The notes beneath the pieces were generated by a model. That model ran no database searches and was not told where the DNA came from. It saw only the letters and a program-made list of their open reading frames with translations. A program made the translations under genes and the position numbers. A stretch of DNA of 63,741 bases, the filler included, from Choristocarpus tenellus KU-1152 (taxonomy: Eukaryota > Protista > Phaeophyceae), in the NCBI GenBank assembly GCA_964200185.2. It is 13 parts of 13 records of this genome, joined end to end, with 100 filler letters (N's around TTAATTAATTAA, not from the genome) between each part and the next. Parts side by side here need not be neighbours in the genome. Positions count along the whole stretch, not along the records: positions 7,148 to 12,739 come from CAXNAD020010316.1; 12 more parts are not named here. The stretch is one strand, 5' to 3'. This document shows positions 7,048-12,839 of this stretch, piece after piece; the stretch's first letter is position 1, and every line of letters begins with the position of its first letter.

Positions 7048-7217
7048 NNNNNNNNNNNNNNNNNNNNNNNNNNNNNNNNNNNNNNNNNNNNTTAATTAAT
7101 TAANNNNNNNNNNNNNNNNNNNNNNNNNNNNNNNNNNNNNNNNNNNNTGTGTTTGGGGTTTAACCCCCACCCTACAAAAAAAAGGTCCCTTGATTTTTTT
7201 CGCGGGGGGGTTGCCGG

Positions 7218-7248
<31 letters not shown>

Positions 7249-7331
7249 ATACCCCGTTGGCGTGGAAATAACGATGCCTCATCCTCGCTGGCTGGGTGCA
7301 TAATATTTTCCGTCTTCTGCCCATCGCAAAG

Positions 7332-10300
7332 GTGGGCGTTACTCCCCCGGCGAAATCAACTCTACGAAACTGGCAGCAAGGCGTAACGTCCCTTCGACCA
7401 GAGTCCTTCGAGGTACTGAAGGAAGTGTGTGAGGCCTCGTCACCACAGGTTGACCGCAACGCAGTCACACTGAACTATCTGAGTCGCGAGGAGTTTGCCG
7501 GCTTCACTTCTCTCAAGCAGAGGCTATGCATCCATCTGCTTGCTAGGCAAGTCAAAACGCCACTGTGTTTTATCGTGTAGACAGCAGTAAGCGCAATTTG
7601 TGCAGGTTGCAGCACATTGCACAGGAACGTTAAATAGGTGTCTCCTGCGATGAAAAATGTAGTCGGCCACTGTTGTGTCGAACGAAAAACCCTTCGTAGT
7701 ATTGTGGTAATTCTACAAATAGTGTGTGTTTCCTGTGTATGTGCGCTCTTGTATTTTATGAAGTACGACAATCGATCCATGAATATTTCCTGCAGTGTCG
7801 ACCCTTTCCTCATCATAACCTGCGCATCATTCTCGTTGACGTCCTTCATGGCCATTCTCTTCTTGCAGGTACAAGTCGTTCTACGGGAAGATTCCTACGG
7901 CGAGGGACTACAAGGACATCAAATCGGACGCGCACGTGTCTGAGATGGTTGTCTCGCTCACCATGCAGATTGTGCCCTAGGAGAAGTGGACACCAGAGCT
8001 TCAAAGGTTGGTAAATGGTGCAGTTGCAGCGGTTATCCTTTTTCGCCTTTTCCGTATCTCCTGTGCACCCATACGTCGCGGTACCCCTCAATTGTAAAAT
8101 ATACTGTCAGCGTCTTTTTCTGCACCGCACTTATTGATTGTTGCAAAACCGCTCTGAATTCCGGACGTTACATGAATGATGCACGGGATGTCAGGGAAAT
8201 GGACAGGCTCGCATATGAGAAGTGCATTATGCACGACCTCTGGGTCAAGCCCCACCACAAGGAGAGGAAGAGGAAGGTGGCCCAACTTCTGCGTAAGGTT
8301 TCATCTGGCGACAAACAAGCAGGGCCCATCCGGCAGCTGAGGGCAAACATCTCCACGGTAGTCGGAATGAAGCCTCTGCAACGGGTCAGAGCCGTGAGTG
8401 TGCCTCCTGTGTTCGTAATTACAGCTGAAACGGCTTGTACCAAAAAAAATAGTTGATGCTTGGTAGGATTAGTGGTGGGTCTTCGTCATCATCATGAGCG
8501 ACAGAGTTGCCTTCCCTACAACAAACGATGCTGTTTTGTCAGTTCTAGTCTTTCGTTGCTAATAACGGGAATAGCCAATCATTTCCTTCAACTGTAGACA
8601 ACGATATTGATCTATGTCCACCTCGTTTCTGCCTCCAACACGTGTCACTGAAAAAAACTACAGACAGACTGGCGTCCTCGCCATGGACTTCTTTCAAACT
8701 ATTTCGCCCCGCAAGCCGCCTCAGGTAAACACGTTCACTACGTAAACCATATCGTTTGCTCTGTGCAATTGACATGCTATCGTACTTCCATTACACTCTC
8801 CCATTTTTGATGTCACCATCGTCCCCTCCTCTCCTCAACAACGTCCTCCGCTGTGTCCACCACCAGATTATCGAGAAGGACTCGACTCTACGCGCTTACC
8901 TCACCACCTGGGATGGAAAATACCAGGATGTACTCAACCAGGTCAACCTCCACCGGGTTCACAGCGGGCGGGGCTGTGATGGTGGCGGCGCAGAAGTTGA
9001 GAGCAACAACGGATTGGCATCAGATGGCGGTGAGAAAGAAGACGAGGGAGGGTGTGAACACAAAGGAGGGGACAAAGACGAGGGAGGGGACGGACTGCCA
9101 GACAGGGAGGATACGGGCAAAGGGGGTTCTGTCTGCAGTGTTCCTGATGCAGAAGAAGAATAAAACGGCCATAGAGGGTGGAACGCGGGCGTTTGCTGTA
9201 CTGAATGCGATCCTCCACCTACGTCTCGGTGAGTAATGTAGTTGTAACGGTGCACATGAGGATAGAGGATAATTAATGACGCAAGATTGGTTTCCATCCA
9301 ATCCGCCGAACGGCTAATTAGGTTGTCTTTTTTCAGCGGTGCACGCCATTAAACCGGTGGAACTTGCGGGGTCCCTTTGTGTGTGGCACTACGGTCGCTA
9401 CCCCCACGTCTCTTTATTTGCCACAGTCCGATTGTGTGTTAATGCATGTACATCACTGACTGTTGCATCTCGCCTGTACTACTTCGTGCTGCTTTGCGCC
9501 GCCAATTTCGTGATCCTTCGTAACTGTGGATTCCCGCGTTGCGTTCTTGTGCTCAATTAATTATTTGGAAAAATACTATCCTGTCTGTTTAATCCTCTCG
9601 TTCATTGACACGCACGACAGGTATTCATGCCCAAAGTGCTCCATCACGCATATGGGCGAATGTGCCTACGTGGAGATTGTAGGCGACGAGAGGCACAAGG
9701 ATCGATTATGTATCAATTGCCCCATGACACAGGAGGGCAGTGAAGGGTCTGGATCGGTGGGGAACGAAGCGGCGGGTCGGGGCAGGGGCAAGGGCAAGGG
9801 TAAGGGTCACGCAAGGAGCGCGAGCGAGTCAGCCACCAGGCAAAGCCTTTTACGTCCCCCCTCACGCAGCAAAACGGCGGACATAGAGAAGTGCATGTGG
9901 GTCTCGGCGTGGTTTCACATTATACGGACATAAAGTCATCTCTGCGTGTTTGGTTTCGCGTTGGTTTGCACGTAGGTCTTGGCTGCTTGTACATCATGTG
10001 GATTGCTCGTCCTTTGTGCGTTGGATGTATCGTTTTTTTGGAGGTTTCCATGGGCCATGGAACTTAGTGTTTTGACGTCTACCCTCCTTTCACGAGATGT
10101 ATCTGATGGGTCTGGCGTTGTGGAGGTTAAGGCTTGACATTTTGGGGATGCCGTGGAAATATAGTCAGGACCTCACTTAATTATAATATTGCCTGCACCG
10201 CTGCTTACAACGCTGTCCTTCTTGTTGTACTGTCTGTCTACTGTGTCGTGTCTCATGATGTCCAAACAGGACTGAGAACACTGCACTACACGACCTTCGC

Positions 10301-12372
10301 CCTCTCGACCCTACGGTACCCTTAGACCGCCTGAAAGAGTTCACCTTCCGCAATGCACCAAAGCTTGCCATAGTGTCCATTGCCGCCGACCCAAGACTCC
10401 TCAACGACGAAGAGGCTACCAACACACACTTGTACCAGGTGCTTAAGTGCTTGCAGGTGAAGATACATCCTCAGGGCACCATCGCGCTATTTGTGCCCCA
10501 CCCGTGGGCCGCACAATTACACCGCCTAAACGATGAGTTGCAGAGTTCGCCAGCGCTGGAATACGGGGTGGTATATTGCAGGAGACTATTGCAATCCGCC
10601 ATGGCCGTTATCAGTCCGTCCGTGTGCCCATCGAATATTGTGCGGCCGTTCAGGAGATGCGGATTATGTCGTGTGCCTTTCTCTTTCACTTTCCCCATGT
10701 TGTTTCATGTTCTTCGTACCTTCTATCTCCTTTCATGTCTCTTGCTCTTTCCCCCGGGTCCTTCGTAGTTCCTTGTTTCATTGTCCGCGAATCGCATGCT
10801 GGTGTTACTTGTCTTCACTACATTATTTTTGCCGCCTTTCTTTCTATTACAGAATTTCCTATTGTTTGTATTTTTTGCATTTGTTATTTGCCTTGCGTTC
10901 CAAACTCATTGTACTATTATAATATTAGTGGTATGAGATTTCAGGAATCCCTACGATAACTACTTGTGTGATGTCACTGTCAAGTTTGACGCATGCCGGA
11001 CCCACGCGCTCGCTCATGCCTTCTCTTCATTCAGGGGCTCTTATGGCGTCGAAGGTGGGCTTGGTTGTGGAGAATCATCCCCTAATCCTAACATACAAGA
11101 CGAGGGGGGGGGGGGCGCCCTCAATCAGTCACTGATAACCATCTCAGATGTTGTCTGGATATGATTCTTCTCGCGCACAACGATGGGACAGAGTTCACAT
11201 GCAACAAGCGAGTAACCGTCGACGACATCTTTGGCCACGGGAGGGATGCATCTCCTCTGGTACTCCAAATCATGTGTGATGTCGAGTACCAACGTGCGGC
11301 AACAGACATCCCCATGAGGGCCCTCCACTTCCTCCTTAACAGGTTCGTTAATAACGTCATACACACCCTTCTTCACAGGAGCAGCGACTTTTTCGTATAG
11401 GTGTAGGAGATCGTTAAACAGTAACACAACGAGCTGGGTGACGGTTCAGGGGCGTCAAACCATACCACGAGTGTGCTTCCCTGGATCAGTACATTGAGCG
11501 TCAAACCACGCCAAGAGTTGTTGCCCTGTATCGGTACATTACTCATACATTGTGATATGATGAATCCGTGCGCAATACAATGTGCTCCTCGGGATAATTG
11601 ACGAACTGCCCTCCTATGATAGGTACACGAATGCTGGGGACAACGTCGTCTCCTTCAGCGCAGAGAGGCACAACGTGGTGGAGGCGGCCCTTGAACAGGA
11701 GGGTGGAGGTGTTCGTGTCCAACGCAGTGTCAAAGGACGAGGTGAAAGAGAAGATGGACACCTCCTTCGGCCAAGCCTACAAGGACGGCAAGTGGAAGGT
11801 AAGAAGGGTGTGCTGTTTTTTTTCCATTGCTTTCCAACTTGTTGTCTCTCTTGGTTCCCTATGGATAGGTCGCGGGCGTGCGATTGTTGTAGTGATGTTT
11901 CCTTGTCGTTGTTTACATGTTGCTAACACGGTGCATGCAGTTACCCACACAACTGCTGGAAATCGCGAGACCCTAAGACTTTGTGTGTGAGCGTCGGTAC
12001 GTCGTAATGTCCTCCTTCCCCACACGAACAAAAACCAAATGTGCTGCGGTACACCACGTATTCTTTAGCCAACGCCAGAATAACCCCTACGTACGTGACG
12101 AAACCTTATCACATGGCTAACCCACTTCAATGCCACATGGTCGGGCTGTCACATGTACGTACATGATGTTGCAGCTATCCACGTCTCTCGTTCAAGAACG
12201 CGTGATAGGCCCTTCCTGCCTGCCGGAAGCCTTGGGGCAGACCCTCGTCCCAACAGAGACGCAGCGATGTTTTGAAGAGGCCGTCAATCCTCAGGGAAAG
12301 GCAACGGGACGCGATGAGGCGACAATTTTCGTTGTGAAGACGGTGGCGACGGACTTCGGCTACCAGGTCGAG
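7332..12372 (+). pseudogene. Spliced gene for an HTH-like / acidic linker / PHD-like finger / beta-class DNA amino-methyltransferase-like protein, disabled. Approximate exons 7332-7546, 7869-8006, ~8135-8393, ~8668-8724, 8867-9228, 9621-9890, 10270-~10523, 11035-11342, 11623-11798, 12175-12372
   Basis: Splicing creates C-x2-C-x9-C-x2-C-x3-H-x3-C-x15-C-x2-C across 9228/9621. It then gives KLAIVSIAADPRLL...QVLKCLQVKIHPQGTIALFV (motif IV-VI-like), GLVVENHPLILTYK...CCLDMILLAHN (VII-VIII-like) and PMRALHFLLNR|YTNAGDNVVSFSAERHNVVEAA..LNRRVEVF (X, I, II-like). This is the motif order of Pfam N6_N4_Mtase. Lesions: TAG 7978, TAA 9161, a G-run frameshift near 11110 and a frameshift near 11690. Confidence 0.65.
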
Positions 12373-12646
12373 GTGAATGTGCTATAGAATGCACTAAGTT
12401 TCATATTTTGTGAAGAACGAACAGCAGAGTCTAGTTACCGGCACGCAGAATAAACATTTTTTTATTCCCGAGTCCTAACCTATCCGCAAGGGCACCCAAA
12501 TACGTCGCGCAGAAAACTATGGGCCGTGCGGGTAAGTATTGCATCGGTAGTGTGTAAAACGCTTTTGCCACAATAAGGTTGACGTTTTTCCACCACCTTC
12601 GGACGAGATTACCTCCAAATCACGAACATTCATGAATCACCTAACT

Positions 12647-12698
<52 letters not shown>

Positions 12699-12839
12699 TT
12701 TTCTTCCCCCCTTCCCCACCCCCCCCCCCCCCCCCCCTTNNNNNNNNNNNNNNNNNNNNNNNNNNNNNNNNNNNNNNNNNNNNTTAATTAATTAANNNNN
12801 NNNNNNNNNNNNNNNNNNNNNNNNNNNNNNNNNNNNNNN

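Follow-up and report, generated by a model that had tools for sequence, protein, structure and literature searches.

Prokaryotic amino-methylases have been captured repeatedly by eukaryotes, and some of these captures have become epigenetic writers. In bdelloid rotifers, N4CMT joins a horizontally acquired bacterial methylase of the PF01555 family to a chromodomain, and this low-copy enzyme has kept its catalytic motifs and is active. In algae, phage ParB-terminase loci have given rise to methylases (Iyer, Zhang and Aravind, 2016; PMC4738411). The same work describes a Dam family of chlorophytes and chytrids with an N-terminal helix-turn-helix (HTH) of the ParB type, as well as haptophyte methylases of clade 6 that are expanded within their lineage (PMC4738411). 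Inactive amino-methylase folds are found in METTL14/Kar4 and in the methylase domain of the DIRS1 retrotransposon, where the motifs are disrupted and the fold has been selected as a binding module (PMC4738411). DNA methylation itself is lacking or very little in most brown algae (bioRxiv 10.1101/2024.02.19.579948). Here, we describe a hidden spliced gene on the + strand of positions 7148-12739 of the window (the whole stretch of DNA that was analysed, 63,741 nucleotides in length), which come from CAXNAD020010316.1 of Choristocarpus tenellus. On balance, we read this locus as a decayed copy of an amplified multi-exon gene family that descends from a ParB-methylase fusion and whose methylase-like domain is non-catalytic.

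The 7148-12739 piece has a G+C content of ~50% and homopolymer tracts at both edges. Its protein-like long reading frames are found on the + strand only, with pyrimidine-rich spacers between them. Nine exons, all compatible in phase, were placed within 7332-12372, with their borders taken from spliced contigs and from paralogous and related loci. As evidence for the borders, contigs of three public runs (X1, X2 and X3) were placed on 7300-12400. X1 and X2 are DNA-like and cover exons and introns alike; in X3, the exons are 5- to 100-fold deeper than the spacers, and some contigs skip the spacers at canonical sites. From this exon-high, intron-low depth we infer that X3, a run whose kind is not on record, is cDNA-like. 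The X3 contigs give five joints, 7546 to 7869, 8393 to 8867, 10532 to 11035, 11342 to 11623 and 11798 to 12175. The same exon set with the same borders is found in loci that are 33-60% identical (L003, L006/L007, L002 and L004), and the database fragments P0004 (exon 6/7), P0015 (exon 7/8), P0001 and P0002 cross exon junctions. The hidden spliced gene is real, and its signal is far beyond chance. A sequence-only reading of this piece had proposed such a multi-exon gene, and the peptides it quoted are indeed present on the + strand where it had placed them.

That reading had counted about ten exons; nine are supported. They are numbered 1, 2, 3, 5, 6, 7, 8-9, 10 and 11. A candidate at 8668-8724 was discarded as part of intron 8394-8866 because it is skipped by X3 contigs and has no counterpart in the relatives. 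The X3 depth at this candidate is ~180, versus 900-2600 in the flanking exons. Exon 1 runs past ESFEVL, where it had been thought to end, to 7546; the joint appears in X3 as 7544 to 7867, and a shift of +2 gives 7546 to 7869 with GC..AG borders. Two X3 contigs join 8393 directly to 8867 (GT..AG, in frame), and the junction near 10523, which had been left unassigned, is that of 10532 to 11035. The features of the piece are as follows.

7148-7331, + strand: 3' portion of the intron that leads up to exon 1; an AG acceptor precedes this exon, which has no ATG, and L006 has two further upstream exons.
7332-7546, + strand: exon 1, putative second (recognition-helix) half of an HTH and a helical segment, followed by a GC donor at 7547; 72 aa align with L006:1140-1355 at 60% identity.
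7869-8006, + strand: exon 2, with an in-frame TAG at 7978-7980; by comparison with L006, the IVP-x-EKWTPEL motif is otherwise conserved.
8195-8393, + strand: exon 3, a segment that is basic, helical and conserved (39-43% identical to L003 and L006).
8867-9228, + strand: exon 5, an N-terminal motif kept in L003 and L006 and then an acidic/Gly linker; TAA interrupts the frame at 9161-9163, and the zinc finger's first pair of Cys lies at 9194-9228.
9621-9896, + strand: exon 6, the rest of a C4HC3 pattern at 9622-9723, a basic Gly/Arg/Lys patch at 9775-9807 and a linker.
10270-10532, + strand: exon 7, methylase-like region of motifs IV to VI (a strand ending in DPRL, a helix and LHPxGT...VPxPW), with a mutated donor at 10533; 31 database relatives.
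11035-11342, + strand: exons 8-9 (a single exon in intact copies), predicted strand-hairpin (motifs VII-VIII), variable region and motif X helix, with a 12-G run at 11104-11115.
11623-11798, + strand: exon 10, a motif I/II-like strand-helix-strand unit, with a 5-bp deletion after 11696.
12175-12372, + strand: exon 11, with a GT donor at 12373; 42-87% identity to L003, L006 and L005.
12373-12739, + strand: start of the last intron, with a long poly-C tract at the contig edge.

This copy is dead. It contains a nonsense codon in two places, its frame is shifted twice and one splice donor is destroyed, so that it cannot make the protein. The piece is an internal fragment of the gene, with one end in the intron that precedes exon 1 and the other in the intron that follows exon 11, since exon 1 follows an AG acceptor without an ATG and exon 11 ends at a GT donor. 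Poly-C tracts lie inside the introns at either edge of the piece (C17 and then (CA)n at ~7221-7253, and more than 80 bases that are nearly all C at 12655-12739), and the assembly probably broke here due to them. Two further observations concern the transcribed and repeated parts. One X3 contig (depth 414, with one extra A) joins 7546 to 11036, so that the last base of exon 1 leads straight into exon 8 and 3.5 kb are left out; it may come from an isoform that skips exons or be the transcript of an internally deleted copy. In the linker of exon 5 (9055-9091), contigs of X1, X2 and X3 go back by ~36 bases or carry extra letters, indicating that the length of the acidic Gly/Asp/Glu repeat differs among copies.

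The nearest database proteins are three partial entries from Choristocarpus tenellus ('unnamed protein product, partial') that are 83-85% identical. Their source contigs, the paralogs L001, L005 and L008, have the same exons and introns, with 75-92% protein identity. Short contigs at 90-99% identity on the 5.1 kb number 3,483 in X1 and 4,016 in X2. These thousands of contigs imply at least about a hundred distinct copies, and the gene family probably has several hundred copies in Choristocarpus tenellus, as judged from the short contigs. Membership of this decayed locus in a very high-copy family is not visible from the window sequence alone. Among four copies, the ratio of nonsynonymous to synonymous substitution (dN/dS) is 0.44-0.60 at dS 0.08-0.21, and the introns are 86-94% identical. 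This pattern is that of a family propagated under selection, with each copy decaying once made.

A search with exon 7 of 1.8 billion representative proteins returned 31 short relatives, which are prokaryote-style gene calls on eukaryotic contigs (ENA and Logan assemblies). Identity to the window copy is ~50% for L003, ~60% for L006/L007 and ~33% for L002 and L004. No relatives were found in the viral contigs or the Joint Genome Institute (JGI) metagenome contigs scanned. Two proteins, P0008 (615 aa) and P0027 (358 aa), match exon 7 only via short tandem repeats of ~60 residues; they look like translated satellite repeats and were excluded from the alignments. All relatives have one more large 3' exon, ~400 bp downstream of the counterpart of exon 11 and beyond the piece in the window (L006:6669-7298, L003:5971-6705, L002:12601-13146 and L004:7000-7578). 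In this exon, ~170 aa are conserved, followed by a basic part and then an acidic tail, and the L003 exon carries an in-frame TAA. No match to it was found in Pfam, PDB or PHROGs, and no homology to it within 7148-12739; its AlphaFold model has a predicted local distance difference test score (pLDDT) of 42.

Among the relatives, L006 is seemingly intact. The paralogs L001 and L008 have lesions, and stops or frameshifts are also present in L003, L004 and L002, the last of which sits on an 835-kb contig. As is expected for a mobile element, copies are many and mostly decayed, with thousands of contigs and with lesions in the window copy, L001, L008, L002, L004 and L003. The high copy number, and the fact that three of the four related lineages examined have decayed copies too, suggest that the gene family is selfish or mobile. 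A transposase domain was found neither in the gene nor within the 20 kb that surround the L002 copy, and no Pfam domains were found among the neighbours of this copy.

The homology of the C-terminal region to the permuted beta-class methyltransferase fold appears to be genuine, with good probability, and was approached by profile-profile comparison with hhalign, exon by exon. The reference alignment, A5, consisted of bona fide PF01555 enzymes (E. coli YhdJ and its orthologues, eleven phage methylases and one plasmid methylase), and the alignment for exons 9-10, A2, of the naturally spliced database proteins P0001 and P0002 and single-exon rows. A2 matched A5 over 94 columns with a probability of 83% (P 9.1e-6, score 40.7), the alignment covering motifs VIII, X and I in that order. 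By comparison, 63 column shuffles scored 12.0 on average (standard deviation 2.6, maximum 19.1), and the reversed alignment scored 14.6. In the aligned blocks, ...DMILLxH...FTCN is the counterpart of the strand pair hE.il..K and y.fN; motif X with its P..L helix, motif I with its sN.GD.V strand, the next helix and the Arg before the second strand are aligned as well. Exon 10 alone gave P 1e-4 and a score of 30.7, versus a shuffle mean of 11.1 (standard deviation 1.8), and none of the 60 shuffles reached it. Weaker matches place exon 7 on the helix and RvLKxxG strand after motif IV (P 0.02-0.04, with the score reached by 3/60 shuffles) and exon 8 on the iiW.K strand (P 0.05, 2/60 shuffles). The three matches are colinear with the enzyme in its permuted motif order, IV-VIII, variable region, X and I-II. 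The resemblance of 10270-11798 to a beta-class amino-methyltransferase, which had been proposed from the sequence alone, is thereby upheld.

Upstream of the exon 1 homologue, L006 has two further 5' exons, and L006:2-345, 646-788 and 1140-1355 join in frame with canonical sites. The first of these contains a G-x-x-R-x-x-A box, and in a language-model feature search ParB_N clusters ranked first (0.96, 167 shared features). No match to it was found in Pfam, PHROGs, NCBIfam or PDB, and as a ParB_N-like domain it is a lead. A tblastn search of phages with this exon returned a single match at E = 4, which lies inside a C5 methylase and was set aside as noise. The HTH-like pattern is split, as the end of L006:646-788 resembles the first helix and turn, and the start of the exon 1 homologue would be the recognition helix. 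The window holds the putative second half only, and its N-terminal segment is plausibly this recognition helix. The earlier proposal of a ParB-type HTH is plausible to the extent that the first half lies on the preceding exon of L006, after the ParB_N-like exon, but no HTH profile match was obtained for exon 1 or for the upstream exons of L006.

The zinc-finger pattern has eight ligands, spaced C-x2-C-x9-C-x2-C-x3-H-x3-C-x15-C-x2-C, and is split by the intron 9229-9620. The ligands are conserved in L006, L004 and L002 (the last with a frameshift and a stop); the paralogs L001 and L008 have lost some ligands, and one is substituted in L005. The PHD-like finger of the sequence-only reading stands as a C4HC3 pattern, but, compared with the canonical PHD spacing (C-x2-C...C-x2-C-x4-H-x2-C...C-x2-C), the His comes one residue early, and the diagnostic Trp ahead of the final two Cys is missing. 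The Pfam PHD model (PF00628) matched neither half, the two halves being on different exons and searched apart. The pattern is a candidate cross-brace finger of the C4HC3 type, and its identity as a PHD is unproven. In L003:690-1214, exons 5 and 6 are fused without a Cys/His finger, and the acidic linker runs directly into the basic patch, suggesting that the finger can be dispensed with or that this lineage lost it.

In combination, intact members of the family would encode, in order, a ParB_N-like domain and an intron-split HTH (both taken from one relative), a helical region and an acidic linker. These would be followed by the C4HC3 zinc-binding pattern and basic patch, an alpha/beta domain homologous to methyltransferases of the PF01555 type, and the C-terminal exon. 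This predicted domain order is that of ParB-methylase fusions of bacteria and phages, and it is most likely that the family descends from such a bacterial or phage fusion.

Several observations weigh against this reading. No exon or spliced database fragment matched the Pfam N6_N4_Mtase, MT-A70, PHD or ParB models or PDB sequences at E = 0.01, and a hidden Markov model that we built from 26 PF01555 members had no match in any reading frame of the loci. The homology comes from profile-profile comparison with shallow query alignments (effective number of sequences about 2). Exon 8 also aligns to motif IV (P 0.0025), which is not colinear with the other matches; this placement was regarded as spurious because three core elements would then have no space. 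The quality of the AlphaFold models was too low for use, with a pLDDT of 53 for exons 9-10 (P0001 with A2) in addition to the low value for the relatives' C-terminal exon. The ParB_N-like exon and the first half of the HTH come from one relative, L006, and lie outside the window. Neither element ends nor a transposase were seen, and the gene extends past the limits of the piece and of every paralog contig. In addition, the copy number was deduced from short contigs, and the RNA nature of X3 was deduced from depth and is not on record.

In a different account, the methyltransferase likeness would be convergent or due to chance and the alpha/beta region would have another fold, for instance as the catalytic core in a transposon protein that is not yet described, which would account for the very high copy number, with most copies decayed. 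The sequence-profile searches were all negative, including those for PF01555, PHD and ParB that the sequence-only reading had proposed. With single exons, spliced fragments and the 31-sequence profile of exon 7, nothing significant was found in Pfam, PHROGs or NCBIfam or, by phmmer and hmmsearch, in PDB, and neither the exons of the window, those of the relatives nor the spliced fragments P0001-P0003 had a Pfam match at E up to 10. Sub-threshold hints were seen for P0001, which has methylase or Rossmann matches at E 0.04-0.2. Both structure models failed, and the prediction of exons 7, 8-9 and 10 as a three-chain complex scored 0.02, which counts neither way. ESM Atlas features of P0001 pointed to Condensation domains (0.94) with a low count of shared features, a result that we took as chance. 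Against another fold, the hhalign match has 83% probability and lies ~11 standard deviations above the column shuffles. The aligned blocks (hE.il..K..y.fN, P..L... and sN.GD.V) are specific to PF01555 and are found in the right order over three exons, and profile searches found no DDE, tyrosine recombinase or Rep domain. We consider this account rather unlikely.

A more far-reaching proposal, which we regard as quite unlikely, is that the family points to a kind of selfish element, not described before, in brown algae and related stramenopiles. The element's own protein would combine ParB_N, HTH, zinc finger and pseudo-methylase, in place of or beside a classical transposase. Such a protein might, for example, anchor an episome-like or giant element to host chromatin, or partition it there, and mimic a modification enzyme, and the element would have burst to hundreds of copies in Choristocarpus.

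The motifs of the methylase-like domain itself bear on whether it could act as an enzyme. At the position of the catalytic tetrad, after the exon 7 strand, the window has D-P-R-L rather than (D/N/S)-P-P-(Y/F/W). Across the 31 relatives, this position reads [DE][KP]x[LM]; it is sometimes not acidic and never aromatic. A second tetrad candidate, N-A/P-P-K, likewise is without an aromatic residue. The loop expected to bind S-adenosylmethionine (SAM) reads S-F-S-A-E-R-H in the clade of Choristocarpus, L003 and L006, instead of D-P-F-x-G-S-G-T-T; in the more distant clade of L002 and L004 it reads G-I-G-V-E-T-T, in which G-x-G and TT are partly retained. Exon 10 is nonetheless the most conserved exon, with an Asp, two Glu and several hydrophobic residues that are invariant across both clades, and the nearly invariant residues of exon 7 are H, G, P, P and W. 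Since the tetrad and the SAM loop are absent in this clade, a non-catalytic domain is likelier than a writer. The most economical reading would be that the fold was retained and its pocket repurposed, with no methyl transfer, and the predicted domain may bind nucleotide or SAM. By analogy with METTL14 and the methylase-like domain of DIRS1, it is most likely a non-catalytic module for binding DNA or a partner.

The sequence-only reading had offered both an active writer of N6-methyladenine or N4-methylcytosine (6mA/4mC) and a catalytically dead domain. The latter, with tetrad and SAM loop lost, is the better fit. The five lesions of the window copy, the lack of a tetrad anywhere in the family and the lack of the FxGxG/GSGTT loop in this clade speak against a writer. 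In a modified form, the family or some of its members, such as the L002/L004 clade, would be active chromatin-targeted 6mA/4mC writers, and the Choristocarpus copies their degenerate descendants. The loop of exon 10 in L002 and L004, with its retained G-x-G and TT, speaks for this, as do the residues that are invariant across clades (the Glu ending the second strand, the Asp in the G-D-x-V motif and several in exon 7) and an architecture that includes DNA-binding and zinc-finger modules. However, no member has the (D/N/S)PP(Y/F/W) tetrad at either candidate position, the L002 and L004 copies have their own frameshifts and stops, the window copy is dead, and methylase models give no match, making an active writer very unlikely.

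The lesions of the window copy were defined by comparison with other copies. The TAG at 7978-7980 in exon 2 aligns with TCG (Ser) in L006, and the TAA at 9161-9163 in exon 5 with CAA (Gln) in the paralogs L001, L005 and L008. The G run at 11104-11115 is 12 bases long and causes a +1 frameshift; copies that are in frame have 11 G or an interrupted run, and the run is shorter by one G in three X3 contigs (depth 231 of 293). In exon 10, five bases (CGGAG) are absent after 11696, causing a frameshift; they are present in every other copy and in the loose ends of X3. The donor of exon 7 reads G/ATGAGT in the window (the slash marking the exon border) and G/GTGAGT in three paralogs, a GT>AT change at 10533, so that the apparent GA donor after exon 7 is a mutated GT one base further on. 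A dinoflagellate origin, which this apparent donor and the AG/G acceptors had seemed to suggest, was discarded in view of the corrected donor and the matches to Choristocarpus proteins. The frameshifts that the sequence-only reading had suspected near 11110 and 11690 are real, corresponding to the 12-G run and the 5-bp deletion. Its 'LNRRV' peptide, on the other hand, is an artefact of this deletion, as intact copies read LERSRRV. The length of the coding poly-G, which encodes Gly, varies from 12 G in the window to 7 in L001 and 11 in L006, with interrupted runs in L005 and L008. This site is frameshifted in three of the four Choristocarpus copies examined; either it is a hotspot of mutation, or the same sequencing error recurs there.

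That the copy is nevertheless functional, with TAA and TAG read as glutamine and the frameshifts arising from homopolymer or assembly errors, is scarcely credible: its in-frame stops are only TAA or TAG, never TGA, and one frameshift falls in the 12-G run, a common site of sequencing error, but the TAG aligns with a Ser rather than a Gln codon, the 5-bp deletion and the GT>AT donor are not homopolymer errors, and the paralogs are open at the lesion sites. TAA and TAG are read as glutamine in some green algae and ciliates, and we know of no code reassignment in brown algae; for this locus, the codons of the paralogs led us to reject it.

As a pseudogene of a family with a non-catalytic methylase-like domain, the locus can be set against the systems described above. 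With the PF01555 N6_N4_Mtase enzymes (YhdJ, DpnA-like and phage methylases) the family shares the order of the motif IV region, the helix and RvLKxxG-like strand, the iiW.K-like strand and hE.il..K..y.fN, followed by the variable region, the P..L helix, the sN.GD.V strand, a helix and the R...E strand. It differs from them in that DPPY and DPF.GSGTT are replaced and no Pfam model matches, and in its ~ten spliceosomal introns, zinc finger, acidic and basic linkers, extra C-terminal exon and hundreds of copies. Like N4CMT, it appears to join a beta-class amino-methylase to a chromatin-type module of eukaryotes; unlike N4CMT, its motifs are lost, its accessory module is an unproven C4HC3 finger, and it is amplified and mostly decayed.

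The ParB_N-like domain and HTH ahead of the methylase-like region in L006 resemble the prokaryotic fusions of ParB_N to methylases (PMC4738411). DIRS1 offers a parallel for a methylase-like domain in the context of a high-copy mobile element, but it is an intron-less retroelement polyprotein. METTL14/Kar4 and DIRS1 also belong to other clades (MT-A70 and the PCIF1-like group 2, respectively), and neither has a ParB_N domain or HTH. The Dam family and clade 6 are similar in being algal methylases that carry a fused ParB-type HTH or have undergone expansion in one lineage. By their description, they are unpermuted or of group 2 (EcoKI/TaqI-like), whereas the Choristocarpus family is permuted, with motif IV before motif I, degenerate, and known here from a brown alga and a small number of other assemblies. 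The Choristocarpus family is a new combination, being permuted, degenerate, intron-rich, zinc-finger-bearing and massively amplified, and it is absent from the profile libraries queried (Pfam, PHROGs and NCBIfam).

The family appears to be another capture of an amino-methylase, in a lineage where DNA methylation is scarce. What sets it apart is that the whole ParB-HTH-methylase order has seemingly been kept, that the catalytic motifs are gone and yet the former cofactor-binding exon is the most conserved, and that the gene has been multiplied to hundreds of copies, introns included. As it is invisible to Pfam, and only three partial proteins were found among the annotated Choristocarpus proteins, the family is a blind spot of annotation. 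Though the locus itself is a pseudogene, the family is a candidate for the reuse of an enzyme fold as a DNA- or chromatin-binding module, as well as for gene amplification.

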